This document shows, in pieces, positions 50,449 through 64,000 of a DNA stretch of 64,000 nucleotides. The stretch lies in the NCBI GenBank assembly GCA_038496445.1, contig JALMLS010000453.1, positions 186,001 through 250,000 on the forward strand, given 5' to 3'. Origin of the DNA: Trichosphaerium sp. ATCC 40318. Its lineage: Eukaryota > Protista > Tubulinea. Position 1 is the first letter of the stretch. Every line of letters begins with the position of its first letter. Made by a program: the position numbers and the translations under genes. The notes below the pieces were generated by a model. The model was not told the DNA's origin, searched no databases, and worked only from the letters and a program-made list of their open reading frames with translations.

Positions 50449-53400
50449 TCAATTTGGACTTACAACAACATTTTGATTTCTAGCAGTAATAGAAGGTCCA
50501 TCTGGTCTTTTTGGACCTCCCATCACGTTAACACCATCTCTAGTAGAAGCATCTTCTTGCTTGGTATCACTTGACATTGTTACACCTGGAGAAGTATTCG
50601 ATTGAGGTGTATCAGAAGTCTAAACAAGAATATGTAAGAACAAATCATAGCACAAGCCAAAAAAAATGAAATTAAAGGGAATGTATAACTCTCTTCTTCC
50701 TTCTACGTACATGAACATCTTGTTTCTTTGTTGCATAAACTACTCCACCAATTGCAGCAGCTACAACAGCAATACCGACAACAGATCCTACAGCGATACC
50801 GGCAATAGCGCCAGCACCAAGACCACCAGAGGCAGCGGCTGCACCAGCACCACCAACTGCAGTAACAGCTACAGCTGGAGTTGCAGCAGCAACAGGTACA
50901 GACGACACCGCAACTAGTCAAAAAGTTAGTTGTCGTTTACTGTAAATAAAATAGTGTTCACTTACTTGATGAAGGAACAATACCACTTGCAGAAGCAATG
51001 TTTGAGCCAGATGTGATGATGTTTTGTAAATTCGAAACAATTGATATTGAAGATACACTCTTAGTACCAACAACAGTCACTGAAACAGCTGTTGTTGCAC
51101 CTGCAGCAGCTTGTCTTTTTGATGAAGTACATCCAGAGCCAACCAAGGTCATATCTGAAAGTTGATCTTCTGTGATACCAAGCATTGTAATGAGACGTTC
51201 TCGCACAAATACTTCTGATGGACAACCGGAAATAACAAACTCAAGTTTTGACTCTGTAAGGAGTAAAACGTCCTTAAAGAAAGCAGAACCTTGACCACAT
51301 AATCCAACACCACCGCCATCTGGGCTGATAGTAAATGTGTAATCATAGACCTTTACAAAGAAACATTAGATGACAATTTGGGTTTGTTATATAGCATACG
51401 AAGTTAGTTCCAGCGATAGTAGTTTGGGTTCGTGTCCCGCCAGCAGCTTCCACTGACATTGTAATATCTTTCCACTCGCCTACTGCCCAATCTACAGTTT
51501 GGTAATCCAATGCACCCTATGAAACAGTTACACTTCTCAAACCCGTCTTTCTACTTTTTTTCGTACACGTCGACCCCAGTAGTATGTTTGACCAACTCTC
51601 ATTTGGGTACTGCTCTCAGGTTCAATGTACAACATCAGTATAGCGTCTGGGAATTGTGTATTACCCATACTACAAAGATAAATCAATAAACAAAGCCTGT
51701 TAGTCAGCACTTACCCATATCCAATAGCAGCAAAAGTGGTTTCATCGCTTCTTAGAACAGATACAGCAATAGTCATGGTACCACCAGGAAGGATTTCTTC
51801 AGTACTACGAATTTAAAGTTAGAACATTGAACAACTGCTGAAACATCTAAAAGCTAAAACGTACCCTTCCCATCGGATGCAATGTGGACTTGGTGCGTTT
51901 ACTAAATCAATAGAATTCTGGGTAGAGGCTTCTTGAAATATTCTTGAAAAAAATAAATAAGAACACACGTGATTTTGTAAACAAGTATTGCTTAAAAAAC
52001 CCAAACCATGTTAGTTACCTCCAATTGGCATCTGATCCTATTTTAAACGTTTTAAAAGATGGTTTCTCATTGATAGGTTTTGGGTTGCAGTCTATTCCAT
52101 CTCCTTCGTATCCAGTTACGCATTTACATTGTGGAGTTGATCCAGATAGATCGCATGTCGCTTGAGCATGACATCCTTGACATGTGACACATTGGAAGTT
52201 TGAACACATTTCACCACTTACACAATCACCACAAACATGTCCAGGACATTCAGTAACGCCACCACACTCAATGTTTCTTGTTGTACAAAGTTCATCACAT
52301 TCTGCGGGTGTGAGTGGATCAGGTGGTCTAAATACAGTTTTAGTATTAATCGAACTACACTTTTGGATCATACGGTGTAACACAAAGATTATTTTCACAT
52401 TCTTGGCCTGCCTGGCAATTTCCGCAATCGAGAGTAGTTCCACATCCGTCATTAAGCATACCACAAGCTCCAGAACAAGTATTGGATGGAATACACTCAC
52501 AACGACCTGTACAAAAATTAGTACTTCTTTACCTCACATAACAAGAAAAGAACATTGGCTATAAAAGAATGTTGTCTACCTTCAGAAGAGCACGTGTTTG
52601 GACCACTACAAGATCCACAAGAAATATCTTCACATCCATCAAAAGCAGAACCACAATTCTGTCCTCGTTCTGTACATACATTTGGATTACGGGTATTTGT
52701 GCATTCAAAGTCTATTCATTATTAGAATGAAATGCTATCTAGCTGTTGTAGTATTTTTGTTACTTACTACACTGGTCTACAGCAAATGGTCTTGCGTTGT
52801 AATTTTGGAATCGAGTGAATGCGCAATACATGAGGTGTCTGTCACCACATTGACGTTGGCTACATGCCATTTTGGTCTGGCTGTCAGAAACAATGATCCT
52901 TGCAAATAAAAATGTTAGATTCAAAATGAAAAAAAAGAAGATGGCTGTTTGAGGCTTTGTACGTACTTGTATCGCCATATGTAGTAATTTGCATTACCAT
53001 CAGATGTATCAATTACATCAGTTTCGCAAGTCCATAAATGTTTTTTCTCTATTATCGTGGCAAGTTCATCAGCAATGTTAAACTCACTATTACCATTTTC
53101 GTTTATATCGCCACCAATTGAAGGACGTTTCAGGCTTTCGGTGCAAGTGGTCAGGTATTCGTTAACTTGGGAAAGTAAATCTGTGTCCCATTCAACCGCA
53201 TTAAGACCATATAAAGCTCTACAAAAAGGTGTTAATAAAAATAAGATTTTAAGGGACTAAAATCACTTTGAGTACCTTTCATCATTTACAACTTGAAGAA
53301 TATCTTGAGGAAATCCAGGTATAACCTCACACTTATCATTTCTACATTGACTTCCTGAAGCACAAGTACCACAACCGTCGCTGTTACCGCAAGCGTCTGG

Positions 53401-55525
53401 ACCACATTCTTTGGTACCACATTGTTGATCACATGGAACACATTGTCCATTCTTACATTCGTTAAGGCCTTGACAGACTCCACATGACCTTCCAACACAG
53501 TTACTCGGACCACATTCTGTTGTTCCACAAGAAACAGTGCATCCTGAGTCAAAATCGACAAGGCAATTAATTGAACTGATATGAGCACAAGCTGCAGTTC
53601 TACTATTTTGGGAGAAGCGATCATAGTCTGTCGAACTAAACAAAAAGTTAGCTCAAAAAAACCCAAGAACTTTTTTCGGGTTTGGAAAAAGAGAACGTAC
53701 TCTCTGTTGTTTACACTTGGAAACATGATACCTATAATATATTGGTACGAAAGGTTGATTGTCTAAGGTAAATCCTAAATAGCTTACCTCCATTAGTGTC
53801 ATCATGTGAGCAATCGAAGTTGTGACCAGTTTCATGACCAACAACACGATGAGCTGAATGTCGACTATTCAAGTGATTGGAAATACCTGAACCAACATTC
53901 TAGCACTATGTTACCAGTGAAACAAACTTGGTTTGCATACCGTTCTACATATGGTACCGACCCAAGCGAGTCCAATAGTACCAGGAGATGGATAACAATT
54001 TGTCATGAGATGAAGAAGACCTGCATCAGGTTTGTTGTCTTGTTTCCATGCCGAGACTTGATCCAGTTTTGTTTCGATACCAGGACAACTGTTACCGAGT
54101 GTATTCCAATCTGGACCGCCAGGTGATTCGTTGATTTGAAGGGATTCAATTGTGAGATGAACATTCTATATTACACATTAGGACTAGTAATACAACTTGA
54201 AGGACAAAATCAAAACATGAGTGAAGAAAATAGCTTCAAAAAGCGTACAAATTCTCTTTCGTAGTACACGTTCATATCCATCCATACTAAAGTTGAAATG
54301 AACTTTAACACAACGACACAAAAACACAAAAAGTTACCTTGTTCAATGTAGTCTGTCGCTTGTTGTGCTCCACCCACCACTGCAACAAACCCAGCATCTG
54401 TAACAACAGCCTAATTTAACTTTAACTACCTAAAACTAGTCAAGGGGTTACTTACCTGCATTAATTGTTTATTTGTTTGAGGACAAGGAGATGGCGCTGC
54501 AGATACCAGAGCTGGAACTATTGATTGGTCTTCAATGCTCCTGACGAGAAACCAATAAGTACCGCAAGTTGTTACGTTTGGTGTAAATTACCTTTTAGGC
54601 ATAACACTATGTTTATGTTCTCCAGTGCCGCATAAATGTTCACGTGTGTCTGGATCCATCATGCTTTCTCTAAAAAACAAAGTTAGCATTGGTTGGTTGG
54701 GTTATAAATAGTCAGTACCTGATGAGTACATATTTCCCTTCAGCAAGCTTTTCTACATGTCTCTTGCTCATAAAAGACTTGTGGCTAAGAAAACGGGTAA
54801 ATTTTTAATTCGAGCGACGAAAACTCAATTTGAGTTTGTATTATCACGTGACGAAAACGGATAAGAAACAAAACCACATACATGCGAAAAGTCACGTGAG
54901 AATTCATTTTTGAATACAAAAAATGCAGAAAGTTAAAAGCACGTGACAATGCAAAAATTGGCGTACTTGGAAGCAAGGTCAAATACAACTCTATCGCCAT
55001 TAATGACAAAAGCACCTGAGAAGGTACCATCCTCATGAGCGATAAAACGGAGATCTTGGTGATTGCTTCCAATACCCTTGTATCCATTTCTGGGTGGAGG
55101 GTAACTCGTAATTGTTCCATTGACTTGTACTTCAATCTAAAATACATCGTTTTAGGCAGAAAAAAGCTTTACGAGCGCTACCACCAACTTACCTCTGCAT
55201 CAGGACCAAAAACAGAATAAGATCTGACTCGGAATACTTTCTTTTCATTGTTTGCTTTATGGATTACGAAACGTCTTTCAATACCACCACTGCGCTTGGA
55301 GAAGCGCGCTGGAGAAAGTTCCACTAGAATAAATTTGTAAGTATCAAAGTTTTGTAAAAGTGCTTGTGGAGTTCTAAGTCGTTTTTACTTGTAAACAACA
55401 CGCATGTAGAAAAGTTTTAGCGTACTTTTGTAAGCAACATCATAATCATTCACTCTATCCCAGTACGCCTGTTCGTAACATGAAACAGATATTACAACAA
55501 GGCACAAAGCCAGGAGTTTCAACAT
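50449..55525 (-). CDS. Type I membrane reprolysin/ADAM-like (M12B) metalloprotease with Cys-rich repeats, CAP-like, EGF-like and SEA-like regions
   Basis: Signal peptide MLKLLALCLVVISVSC; prodomain HLCGT (Cys switch); GTIGLAWVGTIC; zinc motif HETGHNFDCSHD; Met-turn GIMFP; CGxDxCG..CGxC repeats; VVNDE/RALYGLNAVEWD (CAP-like); EGF CHAQATC..CKCVTGYEGDGIDC; TM GAIAGIAVGSVVGIAVVAAAIGGVVY. Confidence 0.85.
54844..54946. promoter_or_regulatory. Cluster of three CACGTG E-box palindromes inside a long intron
   Basis: ATCACGTGAC (54843), GTCACGTGAG (54891) and GCACGTGAC (54939), about 48 bp apart. Confidence 0.5.
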
Positions 55526-56242
55526 TGTTGAAGAGATACTTGTGCTGTTTTGTGTTGGAATAATTAATGTATTGTTCACAAGTCCAGGAACTAGCGTCGC
55601 TACCAAAGTGTGTACATATCACTGAGCGCCGTCATGGCATTTTCTTATTACTATCGCGAGCATATAAGAAATTCGCCTGTAAATAGCTTGGGTTGCGAAT
55701 ATGTTATCGTCGAATATTTTTTGTTTAAAACACTGTATGAAAGCGATACAAGGCCAATAAATAAGTTGTCTGAAGTAGCTTTCTTTATATCGCTGTATTT
55801 GCGACATTGCCTCTTGTGGCCATATAATCATAAGTATACTGTTGATAGAACATTGTTTGATATTCCTTTTCCACTCACAATATATATTCTGCTTTCTGTG
55901 GTCTCTGTACGCGCGAATTGAGTTATTCTGTAATAACGCTAAAAACCTGCCAAATCATTTATGGAATCTCTTGGCCTTACAGGCGCATGTTCTGTTTTTT
56001 CTGAAATCACGTGCGCAATGTATAGTGCAGCGCACTTCGGCAGGCGAATCTGATGGTTGGAAAAACGCGAAATTGGCCGAAAGTGTAAATAAATAACCTC
56101 ATTTTTTGCGCGTAGACTTGTACAACTTTGCTATCGTATCCTACATTAAATTAGAAAGCTTGTGTGGGCTTTTAACAAAATGGTAGTTCGACAAAGGAAA
56201 AAAATACGGTAATAAGTAGTCGCTATAATAATAAGTAGTACC

Positions 56243-56800
56243 ATGCCTGTAAAGAGGCGCCAAAAGGGTTTTTTAGGATCACGTGACAAACATCAGGTAT
56301 TTTTTTTTTTTTACACAAAGTAAGCCGTTATGGCATTGTTCTTTGTGACTTGTAGAGCTCCAAGTTGGCTGAGAAGCGAGTGGTAACCACCTTGACAAAA
56401 AAAGTTAGTTCGAGGTTAAAAACACTCAGGAGATACTATTTGTAGTTCCGTTTTGGAAGCTGGGCAAAAGCAAACTCTAACGTAGTCTATTTTGAAGGCC
56501 TTTAGACAAAAATTTTGGTGTTTGTAAAGAGTTTTAGCCAAATACGCGAACGTACGTGTGGACATCATAATAGTCGTTGTCTCTTATCGCAGTCGGCCTG
56601 TAAGACGTAACAAGCTACCAATAGTTTCCTACAATAAGATATTAAGCCAAGAGTGTGGAGTGTTGAATGAGAAGAAGGAGAAGCTGTTTTTGTAAGTAAT
56701 ATTAACCACAAAATAAAAAGTACACACAACTTGTAACGACTAGCGTGCTAGCTTTTATACTAATATAACGTACGCCCAGGTCACAGGCATAGACGAAGGT
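56243..56800 (+). CDS. Possible small spliced gene, or 5' exons of the downstream kinase
   Basis: MPVKRRQKGFLGSRDKHQ with a GT donor and further short exon-like segments; no reliable full model. Confidence 0.25.
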
Positions 56801-57399
56801 ACGTTTTACCATTTAAAACGCACAACTAACAAAAAAGAAAATGCCATACATACAAACTTCATCTAATGAAGTACGGAGATGTGTTGATTTGTTGGGTGAA
56901 TTAGCTTTGTTTAAATCGCTGTATTTACGACACAGCCGTCTTATATACGTACAATATGGTGGAACCTTATACGACACAATCTATTGTTGTGCTATACCAT
57001 TGTTTTCCAGAATACTTAGCGTTGTCCGAATTTCGTTTTAAGTTGGCAAAACAATCACGTGATTTTTTTTTCGAAATCAATAACAAAGCTCGCACATCCG
57101 CAAATACATGGCGAAAGCAATCAAGCTAAATGTTGCTGTCATAATTATTGAATACCAAGACCGAAGCTACGTGAACTGAGCATGATTCGCCAGCCTCATG
57201 CGACTTTATTAATGAATACAGTTTCTCTTTCTTTGATTTTATACAAGGGCATGATTGTCTTTGCATAGCTGTAGGTAGACGTCCTTATATGACAGCCATG
57301 ACGCTACTTACACTAAACATGTATTTTTAGGTGCTAATATAGTGCACATACCAACTACCCTGTGACAAAAAGAGGCAAACGTAGAACTGCTTCGAACGC

Positions 57400-60053
57400 T
57401 GTTTATTTTGTGCTATTGGCTCACTAGTCAACACGTTAAGAAACTGAAAACCTGGGAGATATCTTCTTCATCCCCAACGGTGTCATACATGATTAAAAAC
57501 GTTCAGAAACTGCCTGTTATATTAGGGAAAATTCTTCTTGATTTCAGAAAAGAAGAAGTTCGGAAAGTACACGACACTGGCGGTTCACAATACAACGTAT
57601 TTCCTTCACTACTATCACTGTAATAATTTAAAATATAACTATATTAAGTAAGAGCGGCGGTTAGTGTACAAGGTTATTAGGTTTAGACACAGCATGGCGT
57701 ACGTTATCTTTTTTCTAGTAGTAAATTCTATTTTGTCACTACACAGCGCTTTCCTGTTGATATTTGTCGGTGTTTACGGCTATAACAAACTAAAATAACG
57801 TTTTTAGGGAGGAAAAAATAGATATCACATGTTTATTCACGTGCGACGCCGCGGAAGGAGTAGGTGAGCGTCTTTTTTGTATTGGGAGTTTTTTTTTTCC
57901 CCGTTAAAATTATTTGTCGATTTCTCTATCACGTGATTATATATCGAGATGCGATCCCTAGATCTCGATCTTTGGCTATTTTTATGTGTATTTAAGGTTA
58001 TTATTCTAGATTTCTCAAAGGACTCCGCGATACCATTGCCTTGTTATTATTCTTCACTTCGTGACAAGTTAAAAGAATTGGGCGAATGTAGAAGAAATAA
58101 AATTATAAAGTGTATTGATTATAAAGACGTTGATGATGAGTTTGTGCGTATAGACCACGAGAAAGGTAAGTAAATATGTTCGAATTGTTAAATTTAGTGT
58201 GTTATTCATGTTCGATGTAGATTGGGAGAACGCTTTGAAGCACATACAAAGGAACAAAATGACAATCTATTTAAAGATTTCTTATGATCTCATTCCCCAA
58301 AAGTTCTTGGATTTACAATCAGACTTGAATATTATACCGTATTCTGATTTCTCGGGTATAACAAGTATAAATGAAGGAGCATATGGAGCAGTTTATAAGG
58401 CGCAAAATATTACAGGTAAGGACTGAAAACGTTGTCAACTTTTAACCGAAAAAAAAAAAGGTGATGATGTTGCAATGAAGAAGGTGAAGCAAGCTTTTTC
58501 GCTTAAATCTGATGAATTAAATAAAGCACAAAAAGACCTCTTCGAAGAGCTTAAAATACACAGGTAAGATGATATAGGTTTCCATATAAACAAATTACTT
58601 TTTTTTTTCTTTATCGCTAATTTTAAAAGTAAGCTAGATGATCCAAACATAGTCAGATTCATCGGTGTCAGTATGAGCGATGGTATATTACATATAATTA
58701 ATGAGTATATGGAACATGGATGTCTTTCTGCGTTCCTTGAGAAGCATAGAAGGGACCTCTGTCCTACAATGTCTATACATGTAGGTTTTGGTTTTTTTTT
58801 CGTAGCTAAACAACTTTGTCACGTGCAAATTTTTCTTTTTAGATAGCCACAGAGATTGCAAAAGGGATGAAGTACCTCCACCTGCGAAATTCCCAAATTT
58901 TACATAGAGGTACGAGTACAAATGATTGAATCACTACAATCTTTTTTGACATATTTCCAGATTTGAATTCTGGTAATGTGCTTCTGGCAGGACCAATAGA
59001 ACATTTGAGGGTATGTATTTCAGACTTTGGTTTATCTAGAGTATTACAGAATACAACTACAAGCAATTGGTATGCACTAAAAAACCTGACTTAAGGAAGA
59101 TGTTCGAACTAGTTTTATTTAATACTTTCTTTATTCAATGACGCTTGTAGGTATTCTAAGTCTCGTTGTCATGAAGGATATATGCCTCCTGAGATTGTGA
59201 ATTACAAAAGCGGCACAGACGTACCGTATAACAGTAGTGGTGATGTCTACGCTTACGGTATTTTAATGTATGAAATATGGACTGGAGAAGCACCTTGGGC
59301 ACGTGTAACAACCTCCGAATGGCAGAAAAAGGTACCATATAAACTTGATTATATGCTAGCTGATGCGCTAAATTTGAGGTTGCGAGTGGAGATCAATTTG
59401 ATGATCCTAAAAACGCACCTGTTTGGTGGAATCGATTGACAAGGAATTGCATACAACAATTAAAAAAAGGTGGGAACTTTTGGTTTAAAAAATTAAATGA
59501 TGCACTAACGTGTCTTATTAAGGACGGCACAGGCCTGCCTTCAAAGAGATAGTGTCGGTTTTAGAGCCTATTAACAAGGCGTTTCCTTCGTCTATTGCGT
59601 ACAAAGTTTGGGATAACTTCAAAGAAGGAAAGAACAAAGTGTTTGTTTTGTATGTCGCTTTTAAGCTAAGTCATCAAGTTCTTTGTTGACGCTTTATTTA
59701 GCATTCTAATGGAAGGTAAACAACAATACAACTTATACTTTCAACAAATGAATACGGTTAAAAAACTGACCGTTGAAAGTATACGAATAGGTAAGTGCAA
59801 AGAAAGCAAAGCTGTGACTTTTCCCATTTTTTTCTGGAATAATCTTTAACTCTTTATGAAGGTAAAGAGTCTCATATCAACATTACAGCAACTTGTGAAA
59901 ATAAAAGGTATCAGCTATCTTCTTTTTTTTGTAATTTTAAAGTAAGAGCTAACACATCCGCATAGTTCAGTATTTAAAGGAAAGGATTTGAAGAGGCCAG
60001 CAAGATGGGTAAAATATCTTAATGTATTAGCCAAAAATAAAATTAAACGCTAA
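57400..60053 (+). CDS. TKL-group protein kinase with N-terminal PB1-like and C-terminal PH-like domains
   Basis: IDYKDVDDEFVRI (PB1 acidic motif); INEGAYGAVYKA, VAMKK, LDDPNIVRFIG, IAKGMKYLH..ILHR/DLNSGNVLL, ISDFGLSR, YMPPE, DVYAYGILMYEIWTGEAPW, RPAFKEIV; tail ..RWVKYLN. Start uncertain. Confidence 0.85.
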
Positions 60054-60517
60054 CACACATGCCCAACAGTATTATTGTAGTAACAACAGTCTTGTCTTTA
60101 TTTTGGTGTAATGGCAGTTCCCTTTTGGCATTGTCGGTTAGACTCTTTTTGAAAAACTGATGAGTGAAATCCACCCATTTAGGTCAAGGTTATTGAATTA
60201 AGATGTACTAAAATCTTCGTACTGTTAATGTGATTGAAAACAAAAAAAAAATGCTTTTGTTTGATAATGTACGTTAATCGTCAGCGATCAGATAGTTATT
60301 TTGGATGTAATCGCTCCTTACACTTATTAGGATAAGGTAACTAGAAGATGAGTTGAGGCCTATTTTCTCAAATTGGTCATTGCTGTAGTTAATGTTGAAC
60401 GCTGTTTGAGCCAGTTTTAGCTTTTATGCATTAGAATATCCAAAAGATGACCCCAGGCCTTGTTATTGTTAAACTTTTGTTGCAATAAATCTAATATATT
60501 ATTTGATATACATTTCT

Positions 60518-61670
60518 CTATGATTGGTCTGTTAACTCTGTGTCTGGTTCAGATGAATTCCAGTCTTGCGATGCAAGTTCGTATGAATTTCCATCTTCCT
60601 TTTTCCTCATCTTTCTGGCAATCTAAAATGTAGTTAGAATACACTCAATTTTACCACTAAAATACAGTAAAAAGCATAACTCATATTACAAACGGCATAG
60701 TTAATTTCAGAAAGAAGAACGAATGCAAACATTTTCGGATCGTTAACGATAAAAAAAATCATAAAGAACTCTTTGCTTACAGCATAGATTATCATAGCAA
60801 GAGCAATTCCGAGAGCAATACCCATAACGCCTGTAAGTATTATAACTATAACCCATATACTTATCCCATTCGCTGATGGCTGGGTGCCTTCAGAGCAAAT
60901 TTTATAATTCTCCTAAGTTGCTATGTTATTTGTAGGTAAGTCGTAAAAAAACTTCTAAAAACAGCGTAGCATTGCGCGTGTTAACGACTTGCCATTATAA
61001 TGCACCCTGGTCTATCTACCGTGCTAGGAATAGCAGGGGATTTATGCGTAATACAAGTGATCTCTTCAGCCTAAAACAAACATTTAAACTACGCACGTGC
61101 CTGTAAAACCTAGAATCACGTGACAAATTCAAAAAACGAAACGGTATCGAAAAAAAAAAAAGTATCGGTTTACCGTAGTGTCTATCGTCTTTCCTATTAC
61201 TACTGCATCGTATACGCCCAAATACGATAAAGAGTAAACTCCAGAAGCTCCTGTAGCATAAAACAGTATTTTTTGTCCTTTCGTAACGGCATTTAGACAA
61301 TCACCGCTACCAACGCCATGAGAAGAGAACCCAGATACCTAACACAATCCAAAAACAAATTAACATAAGCACTAAATTAAAACATACACGCACAGTTATT
61401 TCTTCGGCTGTACATCCTTTGTAAAGCTCTACGACGGATAATAAAGCAGTTGCTTCGAATCGACTTGATGTATTTACGGAAACAACCGTTGCTAAGCCAA
61501 TAACTGTCGCTTTGTTTACGCGATCCTTTGTGGTATAATGAGGCGCTAGTAATGCTATCACAAACGAGGAAAAACATTGTAGTTCTGCTAAGGACAATGT
61601 ACATACCGTTATGAGGAGGTCTACAAGATAATACATAAGCAACCAATAACAAGATACCAAAGGCACGCAT
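60518..61670 (-). CDS. Type I membrane protein with NtA (agrin N-terminal)/TIMP-like OB-fold ectodomain
   Basis: MRAFGILLLVAYVLS|CRPPHN/ALLAPHYTTKDRVNKATVIGLATVVSV..ATALLSVVELYKGC..IT/VSGFSSHGVGSGDCLNAVTKGQKILFYA..; TM IWVIVIILTGVMGIALGIALAMIIYA; short tail with YEL. Confidence 0.7.
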
Positions 61671-63039
61671 TCGAAGGATTTGTGGTTCTTTTTCGTTGTA
61701 GTCTATTCTAGTCTCACGAGCAAGAAAAATACCTATGATGTGCGAAGCTTCTAATATCCTTACAGTCCCACGCTAAACCAAAACCCAGTGTTGGTCCAAT
61801 ACTGAGTATCAACTACGACCACCCTTTCCTATCTAACACTTCTACAAAAATTACCTACATGCCCAAACCAGATATGCACTTTCCAGCAAGTCCGCTTCAC
61901 AATTTGTGTAGGAATTGAAATTTCCTAATCTAGCGTCAATAAAGTATCGAAGAATACAGTCAACAAACTTACAGAATTTTATCCTAAATCGGATAGATAA
62001 TCGTTGTTGCCTCTGGTAGTGTTAAAGGGCGGTCTTGGCTTGATTATCAATTACTGCAATAACAATCACAATTTATGAATGTTATCCAGCCGTTATCACC
62101 TAGTGGTTGCAGCGATAAAAAAGAACGACTGAGTTTAGAAGTATTAAAAAAAGTTGAAGTATAGATATTTGCAATACGCTTACTATAAACGCGGAGGAAC
62201 CAATTGAAGAACTAGTGTTATCATGCTGAGAAAATTACATAGAAGCCAAGATAGTGGCACACTCGAAAAGCAGTTCAATACTGTAACAGATCAAAAAGCT
62301 AACATACAAAAAACCCTGAAGTAGAGTATGGAATCAACGGGGCTAGAGGCTTACTACCAATGCGCTTTTATTCTAGGATCGCCTATCCTTATCAATGGCA
62401 CTACTAGAGCAACTGTCCTAATCATTGAGTATTGATCGCTGCTAACGTGACATTATTTCAACTTGTAAAACCAGAAAATCAGAAAAGCAATTTACCTCTA
62501 TAATCTCTCCTTTTAACTGTAACAAAACTTGTTAACCTCTTTGATATCGAACATGTATCTACTCACATTGATAGTATTTTCAAATGAAACGCGATGAAAG
62601 TAAACCAGCTAACTTGAAGTTTTATTTTATCTTTTTTTCGAGTAGTTCGCGCGAACTTGGTTTCTCCAAGTTCATCTTAAGAAATTGCGTTTAGATACTT
62701 ATCTGATCCATTGATAACTTTAGTGTCTTTTTATCACTTTCACTAGATTTCTCGTCATTTTATTTTAACCAATACACAAAAATGAGATCACAAAAGTTTC
62801 CTGCTTTCTTGCTAGAATTTGAACTGTATCGACTTGCCTACTTTTAGAAGCCAATTCAAGAGCTACGGTACTTCCGTTATATTGTGAGGTGAAACCACAT
62901 TAAACTGGGTACACTAAAAAAGCTGGTGAATTTTTGTCTGTTTTCAGTATGCCTACACTCTAGAGAATACAATTTAACTAACAAATTCTATAGCCCTAGC
63001 ATCGCAGTACTATGAACCAGCAACGTTTTACCTCAAAGT

Positions 63040-63122
63040 TTTTACGACAAACAAAACAGACTCACGTGCCAAATTGAGATTTTACGACAAACAAAACAGA
63101 GACTCACATGCCAATTGAATTT
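63040..63122 (+). repeat. Tandem duplication of about 40 bp containing an E-box
   Basis: TTTTACGACAAACAAAACAGACTCACGTGCCAAATTGA followed by TTTTACGACAAACAAAACAGAGACTCACATGCCAATTGA. Confidence 0.85.
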
Positions 63123-63589
63123 TTGCGCACGTGATTATTTCGGAAAACATTAGCTTCCATCATTGAACTACTTGTAGCTTTAAACGTATTTTCGGGTTAT
63201 CTCAGTTCGTATTTATATCCGTAGTACTTCACATTCTTGTGAGTGGAAAAGGGAATATCAAACAATCTTGTATCAATAGGATATATATTGATTATAGGCA
63301 ATAAGAGACGGTGTTGCAAATACAGCGGTTTAAACAAAGCTAAGTCACCCAACAAAGTAACACTTTTCTTTTCGTCTAAAATTACCTCTGGAGCCTTTTT
63401 AGGTGTTCTTCTAATCGCAGTTAGTTAAGGCAAATTCTATGCCTGCTCGCTGTTTTAACGAAACCGTCAAAACATCGTTCATTGCTGATTGTATGTGTGC
63501 TGTTTGCGCTAGCTCGCTAGCTCTTGAAGCATCGTGAACTTTTTTTATTATTATAATAGCACAACACCAGCATCTCATCTCGTTCAAAA

Positions 63590-64000
63590 ATGTTGAGACT
63601 CTTGGCTTTTTGTCTTGTTGTGGTATTGGTTTCCTGTTACGAGCAGGCATACTGGGATAGAGTCAATGATTATGACGTTGCCTTTAAAAGTACGTTTCGA
63701 GTTATATTTAGGCATTGTATTTGCTTTTTTATTCCAGAAAAACCATTTATTTTATTGCAAGATAAGTTTCACGTACAAGCTGTTGTATTTAACATCATCC
63801 TCTAGTGGATCTATCTCCAGCACGCTTCTCGAAGCGCAGTGGTGGTATTGAAAGACGTTTCGTAATCCATAAAGCGAACAATGAAAAGAAAGTATTCCGA
63901 GTCAGATCTTATTCTGTGTTTGGTACTGGTGCCGAGGTAAGTTCTCGTGATAGCATCTTGCTCGAAAAAGCTTTTCCATTTTAGCTACAATTTCTCTTTA
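63590..64000 (+). CDS. 5' end of a close paralog of the metalloprotease at 50449-55525 (inverted orientation, truncated by the window)
   Basis: MLRLLAFCLVVVLVSCYEQAYWDRVNDYDVAFK/..SPARFSKRSGGIERRFVIHKANNEKKVFRVRSYSVFG; same intron positions and near-identical exon DNA to the reverse complement of 55190-55525. Confidence 0.9.

Follow-up and report, generated by a model that had tools for sequence, protein, structure and literature searches.

An apparently orphan, expressed gene for a predicted type I membrane protein between inverted reprolysin-like paralogues in Trichosphaerium, compared with TIMP-type inhibitors

Introduction

TIMPs inhibit metzincins, and their mature chain begins with Cys1, the alpha-amino group of which is free. 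They fold as an OB barrel of five strands, with the inhibitory ridge at the N-terminus, and carry disulfides 1-70, 3-99, and 13-124. The NTR module has six conserved cysteines and a YLLLG-type motif and in most cases does not inhibit proteases; the NTR modules of netrins, sFRPs, and complement C3/4/5 are binding modules, as is the NtA domain of agrin, which binds laminin. Membrane-bound inhibition of metzincins is represented in animals by RECK, a large, multidomain, GPI-anchored inhibitor of MMPs and ADAM10. The origin of TIMPs themselves has been placed within animals by two surveys.

Here, we describe a gene in a 64,000-nucleotide stretch (the window) of contig JALMLS010000453.1 from Trichosphaerium sp. 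ATCC 40318. A first-pass annotation had read this gene as a membrane-tethered inhibitor of TIMP/NtA fold, linked to the two ADAM-like metalloproteases that flank it. On present evidence the candidate is an expressed orphan surface protein, and the balance leans against the inhibitor interpretation.

Results

Organization of the locus

The two divergent, paralogous reprolysin-type genes that had been placed on either side of the spacer are indeed there, with start codons at 55525 (minus strand) and 63590 (plus strand), inverted arms, and Pfam matches. These genes, P1 and P2, form a head-to-head inverted duplication within a four-copy cluster (P1 to P4). The features of the locus other than the candidate are as follows.

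50672 to 55525, minus strand: reprolysin-like gene P1 (ORF list, exon Pfam matches, C58:239941-240192)
55186 to 55870, unstranded: left arm of the inverted duplication (repeat pairs I1 to I3), extending over the 5' exons of P1 plus some 340 nt upstream of them
57949 to 60069, plus strand: traced extent of a protein kinase gene (PK_Tyr_Ser-Thr type), with at least 10 GT-AG joints in transcript contigs
63248 to 63943, unstranded: right arm of the inverted duplication (repeat pairs I1 to I3), covering the P2 upstream region and 5' exons
63590 to 64000, plus strand: 5' part of reprolysin-like gene P2, which runs past the window to about L003:5577

P1 is a multi-exon gene whose product has a signal peptide, Cys-rich and EGF_3 segments, a stalk rich in Ser and Thr, and a transmembrane (TM) segment. 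Its zinc-motif exon (approximately 53732-53872) reads HETGHNFDCSHD and matches Reprolysin_5, Reprolysin_2, and Reprolysin_4 in Pfam; where metzincins have Gly, it has Asp. The corresponding motifs of P2 (HETGHNFGCPHD) and P3 (HEIGHNFGCNHD) are each a complete HExxHxxGxxHD, and P2 to P4, all on the same contig, score 51 to 55 bits (52.5 bits for P2) against a Pfam cut-off of 27.

The arms of the duplication are 75 to 94% complementary and end at 55870 and 63248, which places the candidate in unique DNA between them. The candidate lies head-to-head with P2 at a distance of 1.9 kb and is convergent with the kinase gene. The 8-kb spacer had been described as holding the candidate gene, which is present, but it is not the sole gene there: the kinase gene (PF07714, 30.8 bits, above the cut-off of 23.1) is also spliced and expressed. 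A conserved block upstream of the proteases was considered as an RNA gene and rejected, as both Rfam and ARAGORN returned no RNA gene for it.

Gene model and expression of the candidate

The proposal that pieces scattered over the ORF list splice into one gene is borne out by transcript contigs from four runs in three studies, which give a spliced and expressed gene of six exons on the minus strand (61670-60518). Each junction was placed within the stated cut ambiguity of the transcript joints and then checked against the sequence. The coding sequence has 696 nt (231 codons, TAG stop), all exon phases are compatible, and the introns are GT-AG with the exception of intron 4, which is GC-AG. Both proposed ends of the coding sequence and the proposed junction (EEIT|VSGF) agree exactly with the transcripts, and the motif string quoted in the first-pass annotation is found in exons 2 and 3. 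The exons are as follows.

61607 to 61670, minus strand: exon 1, ATG at 61670, joint 61545/61607 in contigs of runs X1, X3, and X4; carries the signal peptide
61394 to 61545, minus strand: exon 2 (transcript joints and translation), 50 in-frame residues, PHYTTKDRVNK ... ELYKGCTAEEIT, including Cys51 and an NTS sequon
61174 to 61338, minus strand: exon 3 (transcript joints and translation), 55 residues, VSGF...GDCLNAVTKGQKILFYATG..., containing Cys71
60993 to 61070, minus strand: exon 4, joint 60911/60992 (2-nt ambiguity) in all four runs, flanking dinucleotides read; encodes Cys118 and Cys135 and is followed by the GC-AG intron
60781 to 60912, minus strand: exon 5 (transcript joints, translation, P0001), Cys144, short stalk, and TM helix with many G/A-xxx-G/A motifs
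60518 to 60622, minus strand: exon 6 (transcript joints, translation, P0001), stop-transfer RKMRKK, acidic 34-aa tail, and TAG stop; 3' UTR to about 60480

The MMETSP protein P0001 matches the model at 100% from mid-exon 3 through the stop, and exons 3 to 6 are thus independently confirmed.

In the encoded protein of 231 aa, a signal peptide precedes an ectodomain of 154 aa, which has six cysteines (mature positions 1, 51, 71, 118, 135, and 144) and a single NTS sequon; a TM helix and short tail follow. The N-terminus of the protein reads MRAFGILLLVAYVLS|CRPPHN, Val and Ser occupying positions -3 and -1 of the predicted cleavage site after Ser15. The site was assigned by eye with the -3/-1 rule, by which VLS|C is favoured, so Cys as the first mature residue, as had been proposed, is plausible. 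The mature start CRPP is without the TIMP CxC, a point that the first-pass annotation had itself made, and the next cysteine after Cys1 is residue 51. A hydrophobic segment some 30 residues long precedes the RKMRKK cluster and the tail. Overall, the exon translations and P0001 describe a type I single-pass protein with a signal-type N-terminus, one TM helix, and a cytosolic-side basic cluster, in support of the signal peptide and TM anchor previously assigned. Pfam searches with the candidate exons and P0001 returned only TM-type echoes (Glycophorin_A and Syndecan), weak and below cut-off.

Relatives of the candidate

Judging from sequence searches, the candidate is an orphan, and its genome contains no paralogue. 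When exons 2 and 3 were searched against that genome, the gene itself was the only match, and exon 2 has no Pfam, PDB, or own-genome relative. A phmmer search with exon 3 against 1.84 billion representatives recovered P0001, a fragment of the same protein, and one unrelated repeat protein. Neither P0001 nor the open frame surrounding exon 2 brought up a new relative in word searches, and a metagenome DNA pattern search and a related-locus search from P0001 were equally empty; no record encoding P0001 at the DNA level was found, and atlas feature searches with the candidate gave scores under 0.9 or no usable match. The candidate and the 5' end or prodomain of the proteases have '..SC' and 'DRVN' in common; an origin as a copy of that region was rejected after DNA alignment showed no real similarity.

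Comparison with TIMP, NTR, and NtA sequences

At the sequence level, the proposed membership in the TIMP, NTR, or NtA families failed in Pfam, PDB sequence searches, and hhalign alike. Comparisons were run exon by exon. The Pfam TIMP, NTR, and NtA models did not match the candidate exons at E values up to 1. In genome searches, the TIMP HMM (PF00965, E up to 10) did not include the candidate locus among its matches, and the sole match of the NtA HMM (PF03146) lies elsewhere (C13, E = 2.9). The NTR HMM (PF01759) also gave no match at the candidate, in a genome search that had no positive control and carries low weight. PDB sequence searches with the candidate returned nothing relevant and no NtA chain at E values up to 10.

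The same genome provides a positive control in the form of at least 15 canonical N-TIMP-like genes (e.g., L004-L018), which have CxC...C13, SAAC, and EYLIAG. Exons of this family, comparable in size to those of the candidate, match Pfam TIMP in 11 of 14 cases, and the family profile ranks TIMP-2, TIMP-1, and TIMP-3 top in the PDB, with the alignment starting from residue 1. Aligned by hhalign to the family profiles A1 (exon 1) and A2 (exon 3), the candidate obtained probabilities of 0.3% and 0.1%, respectively, and a paralogue search from the family (E up to 10) did not recover it. The candidate has neither CxC at residues 1 to 3 nor Cys13; Cys71 alone lies at an equivalent position. A word search with exon 3 of a TIMP-like paralogue found no full-length family proteins.

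Reprolysin-like matches in the genome number about 30, although some genes account for several of them. We found no canonical N-TIMP-like locus within 64 kb of any listed reprolysin-like locus; the canonical loci either sit on different contigs or are separated from the listed reprolysin-like loci by over 90 kb. Adjacency to a protease is therefore no mark of an inhibitor in this genome. The predicted mature Cys1 is likewise not distinctive in this organism, since in the flanking proteases (..VS|CYEQ) and in the TIMP-like family, too, the residue following the signal peptide reads as Cys.

Discussion

Interpretation of the candidate

We favor, at roughly even confidence, the reading that the candidate is a lineage-restricted type I surface glycoprotein for binding or recognition and not a dedicated TIMP-type inhibitor, its adjacency to the proteases being a duplication by-product. 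The signal peptide would be cut after Ser15, and the ectodomain may form a small beta-rich domain with three disulfides atop a short stalk. The TM helix, rich in small-xxx-small motifs, could mediate lateral association, and the acidic tail would be oriented to the cytosol. Its place beside the ADAM-like cluster is most likely a consequence of an inverted duplication that enclosed a unique 7.4-kb segment with the kinase and the candidate.

A tethered TIMP-like inhibitor, in which the free amino group and the carbonyl of Cys1, exposed by signal cleavage, chelate the catalytic zinc of the flanking ADAM-like proteases, Arg2 occupies S1', and a Cys1-Cys71 disulfide holds the ridge, strikes us as improbable. 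The predicted Cys1, P-x-H, Cys71 spacing, YKG, and domain of about 125 aa all recall TIMPs, but Cys3 and Cys13 are missing, the intron positions are unlike those of the N-TIMP-like family, and HMMs and profiles that detect true family exons of similar size give no support. A genome that clearly uses N-TIMP-type proteins makes a diverged offshoot conceivable, and the candidate lies head-to-head with a protease whose zinc motif, like that of P3, is complete. However, no canonical TIMP-like gene is found near a listed protease, the adjoining P1 has Asp for Gly, and a candidate without homologues can show no conserved linkage. The stalk from Cys144 to the membrane would be only about 10 residues (about 30 after a domain of about 125 aa), whereas the protease catalytic domain stands above Cys-rich, EGF, and Ser/Thr-rich segments, so inhibition in cis would be awkward. 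We accordingly give little credence to the candidate as a true metzincin inhibitor, and its more specific form, an extremely diverged membrane-tethered N-TIMP/NtA-type OB domain that retains the Cys1-Cys71 clamp alone and blocks the adjoining ADAM-like sheddases, also has a low probability in our view.

The fold of the ectodomain is a separate matter, and an OB/NTR-like fold is a tentative possibility that falls somewhat short of even. That such a fold would serve as a membrane-anchored NTR/NtA-like binding module, without inhibition, we consider rather unlikely: it draws on the same pattern-level features as the inhibitor reading and the missing CxC ridge suits a non-inhibitory module, but the NtA and NTR HMMs miss the locus and PDB sequences offer no match. 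A role for the candidate as a substrate of the sheddase-like proteases, or as their partner in the membrane, through stalk cleavage or GxxxG-type TM association and not active-site inhibition, is highly improbable. The abundance of small-xxx-small motifs in the TM helices of candidate and proteases alike, the short, exposed stalk, and the adjacent genes would suit this relationship, yet gene adjacency in eukaryotes is a weak sign of shared function, and protease transcripts are barely assembled in the candidate-bearing runs, where contigs cannot show absence.

Significance

If the inhibitor reading were true, the candidate would be the first TIMP-type inhibitor with a membrane anchor, and its gene would be linked to those of its proteases, in a unicellular eukaryote. 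A cell-surface, genomically linked inhibitor of metzincins in a protist would also fall beyond the animals to which TIMPs are usually assigned, with a bearing on the origin of surface-proteolysis control before, or outside, animals. The more solid lead is the co-occurrence in this protist of the canonical N-TIMP-like genes and the reprolysin-like matches, and the N-TIMP-like family, not the candidate gene, is where protease-inhibitor pairing would best be sought in this organism.

Comparison with known systems

Like the TIMP N-domain (MEROPS I35, PF00965), the candidate is secretory, and its predicted mature chain starts with Cys. Its C-R-P-P-H resembles the TIMP C-x-C-x-P-x-H, with P-x-H within the first five residues; Cys71 is at the position of TIMP Cys70/72, YKG follows a hydrophobic strand as in TIMP-1 (where the alignment shows ...KMYK), and the Cys1-Cys118 span, about 120 aa, matches N-TIMP and NtA domains in length. 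In contrast to TIMPs, it has no EYLIAG-type motif in addition to the absent Cys3, Cys13, and HMM or profile match, residue 2 is Arg where TIMPs have Ser or Thr, and a TM anchor and cytoplasmic tail are present instead of a C-terminal TIMP domain. The N-TIMP-like family of the same organism has the signal-peptide-then-Cys start and places its second key Cys at a similar distance from Cys1, whereas its CxC, C13, ..SAACG.., EYLI(P/A)G, and ..SCDM.GFC.. and its Cys-rich secreted tail ending in CTEGC..CCG.C.P are absent from the candidate. The introns would differ as well, with a phase-0 intron before VSGF in the candidate, whereas the family is interrupted by a phase-2 intron after ..VTG and by a further one ahead of EYLIPG.

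The hydrophobic strand, YKG, G-F, C-x-N-x-V, and K-I-L-F, for which the first-pass annotation had proposed a parallel with the agrin NtA pattern, are present in the candidate; NtA and NTR modules, however, belong to large proteins that are secreted, whereas the candidate is a small TM protein. RECK would be alike, as a membrane-bound inhibitor of cell-surface metzincins, only if the inhibitor reading holds; it is unrelated to the candidate in sequence, and it is held by a GPI anchor where the candidate has a TM anchor.

A spliced gene between two divergent protease paralogues

The candidate gene within the spacer is real and spliced. Transcript contigs from four public runs (three studies) have five joints over positions 60480-61694 of the window, which is G000:C58:186001-250000; each junction was settled within the ambiguity of the joint cut, after which the phases were checked. 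The resulting model has six exons and a closed reading frame of 231 codons, and it reproduces exactly the CDS ends and EEIT|VSGF junction of the first-pass annotation. Four introns are GT-AG, and the fourth in order is GC-AG.

Exons and noncanonical intron of the candidate gene (transcript contigs)
61670-61607, minus strand, exon 1
61545-61394, minus strand, exon 2
61338-61174, minus strand, exon 3
61070-60993, minus strand, exon 4
60913-60992, minus strand, intron 4, GC-AG, donor G|GCAAGT, joint in 4 of 4 runs
60912-60781, minus strand, exon 5
60622-60518, minus strand, exon 6

Database searches turned up a single relative of the candidate, P0001, a 144-aa protein of the marine microbial eukaryote transcriptome project (MMETSP). 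It begins with eight frame-shifted residues and then matches our model without a difference, from the middle of exon 3 through the stop. The frameshift, at 61270-61285 (minus strand), implies an A-run of 7 in the MMETSP transcript versus 6 in the genome, which is why the database entry holds only a truncated product; transcript contigs of the four other runs contain no such insertion or deletion.

As the first-pass annotation had described, the flanking genes are divergent reprolysin-like paralogues, P1 and P2. They are head-to-head and have inverted-repeat arms, which extend to 55870 on the P1 side and 63248 on the P2 side, leaving between them a unique 7.4-kb segment that the candidate shares with a convergent (tail-to-tail) kinase gene.

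Features surrounding the candidate
55525 to 50672, minus strand, P1, reprolysin-like protease
53732-53872, minus strand, zinc-motif exon of P1, HETGHNFDCSHD, Asp replacing the conserved metzincin Gly
~57949-60069, plus strand, PK_Tyr_Ser-Thr-type kinase gene, spliced and expressed, at least 10 introns of 45-81 nt
63590 onward, plus strand, P2, reprolysin-like paralogue of P1

P2 lies in tandem with two further paralogues, P3 and P4, on the contig of the window, and all three score over the Reprolysin_5 cutoff; genome-wide, about 30 matches to this model are spread over more than 20 contigs. By sequence reading, the zinc motifs of P2 and P3 (HETGHNFGCPHD and HEIGHNFGCNHD) follow HE(T/I)GHNFGC(P/N)HD and keep the Gly. 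The Asp in P1 may mean weaker or altered activity of that protease.

A block of about 260 nt (56800-57060, plus strand) lies 1.3 kb upstream of P1 and recurs at 77 to 89% identity upstream of P2, P3, and a reprolysin-like gene on contig C26 (G000:C26:333328-333571; C58:249301-249363; C58:256502-256557). It matches no Rfam family and contains no tRNA; a conserved promoter element is one possible reading, the relic of a lost protease copy another.

The candidate protein and its possible function

The candidate has a signal-type N terminus whose best -3/-1 cleavage site, judged by eye, is VLS|C, so that the predicted mature chain begins CRPPHN and its ectodomain covers residues 16-169 of the model. 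Cysteines fall at mature positions 1, 51, 71, 118, 135, and 144, there is one sequon (NTS), and alternating hydrophobic and polar stretches suggest beta-strands. Next come a hydrophobic helix about 30 residues long with many G/A-xxx-G/A motifs, then RKMRKK, and an acidic tail of 34 residues. The only Pfam hits to the protein are subthreshold transmembrane echoes of Glycophorin_A and Syndecan.

The likeness to TIMP, NTR, and NtA domains proposed in the first-pass annotation drew no support at the sequence level. The Pfam TIMP, NTR, and NtA models match neither the candidate exons nor the locus, and in the PDB the sequences of exon 2, exon 3, and P0001 retrieved no TIMP, NtA, or NTR chain at E values up to 10. 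Exon 3 found no relative other than P0001 among 1.84 billion representatives, word searches with P0001 and exon 2 and searches of metagenomes added none, and exons 2 and 3 searched against the 70-Mb eukaryotic genome (642 contigs) found only the gene itself. Neither a cDNA locus nor a homologue free of introns turned up. The genome does encode an N-TIMP-like family, which served as a positive control for exon-sized queries; aligned with hhalign, its exon 1 profile reached a probability of 0.3% against candidate exon 2, over only eight columns near ELYKG, and its exon 3 profile reached 0.1% against candidate exon 3. Intron positions and phases also appear to differ between this family and the candidate.

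Some features favor the first proposal, that the candidate is a metzincin inhibitor. The predicted mature chain starts with Cys, a P-x-H follows at residues 3 to 5 (residues 5 to 7 in TIMPs), Cys71 is spaced as TIMP Cys70/72 is, a hydrophobic strand precedes YKG, Cys1 to Cys118 is the length of an N-TIMP domain, and the gene is head-to-head with P2. All of these are short and were picked after the fact. Cys1 does not set the candidate apart in this organism, since the proteases and the TIMP-like family are likewise read as having Cys just behind the signal peptide. Among the loci listed, the canonical TIMP-like genes are on other contigs than the reprolysin-like genes or more than 90 kb from them, so in this genome adjacency does not mark out pairs of inhibitor and protease. 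Every sequence-based test that could be run disfavors the inhibitor interpretation, and we regard it as improbable. That the ectodomain adopts a putative OB/NTR-like fold, whatever its function, is a tentative reading with somewhat less than an even chance of being right. An orphan surface protein whose genomic position is coincidental is a reading to which we give an even chance.

A canonical N-TIMP-like family in the same genome

The Pfam TIMP HMM matches three loci in the genome, none of them the candidate's, each encoding a signal peptide and, behind it, CxC...FC.(A/S)(D/E)AVLRV. A paralogue search gave 16 matches, 15 of them clear.

N-TIMP-like loci L004-L018 (genome:contig:position)
G000:C10:325302-325529
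C137:147567-147776
C26:428848-429036
C177:79455
C190:68431
C122:147051
C181:90909
C203:2694
C32:411837
C219:77369
C16:507574
C13:482288
C13:489958
C62:36829
C40:271809

In this protist the family has at least 15 members, with the N-domain over three exons: the first reads CxC..C13..AVLRV..FLAEV..K.P..IVTG, the second ..NSAACGVDFEVGK (containing the ..SAACG.. motif), and the third EYLI(P/A)G....V.SCDM.GFCNVP. A Cys-rich secreted tail ending in CTEGC..CCG.C.P follows. One member, L008 (G000:C190:68431-68610 plus a downstream exon), has PCVPRS in place of CxC and so is without Cys1, and it is also without the SAAC Cys (..VGSAFDF..); this paired loss would fit a Cys1-Cys70-type disulfide.

Judged from its sequence, the family carries a plain N-TIMP signature. 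TIMP is its best Pfam match, hit by 11 of 14 first exons, and the family profile searched against the PDB places TIMP-2, TIMP-1, and TIMP-3 at the top, aligned from residue 1, with E values of 0.02 to 0.2 that are marginal but consistent. Because the origin of TIMPs has been placed within animals (PMC10755359, PMC4860685), this canonical family is a more valuable lead than the candidate.
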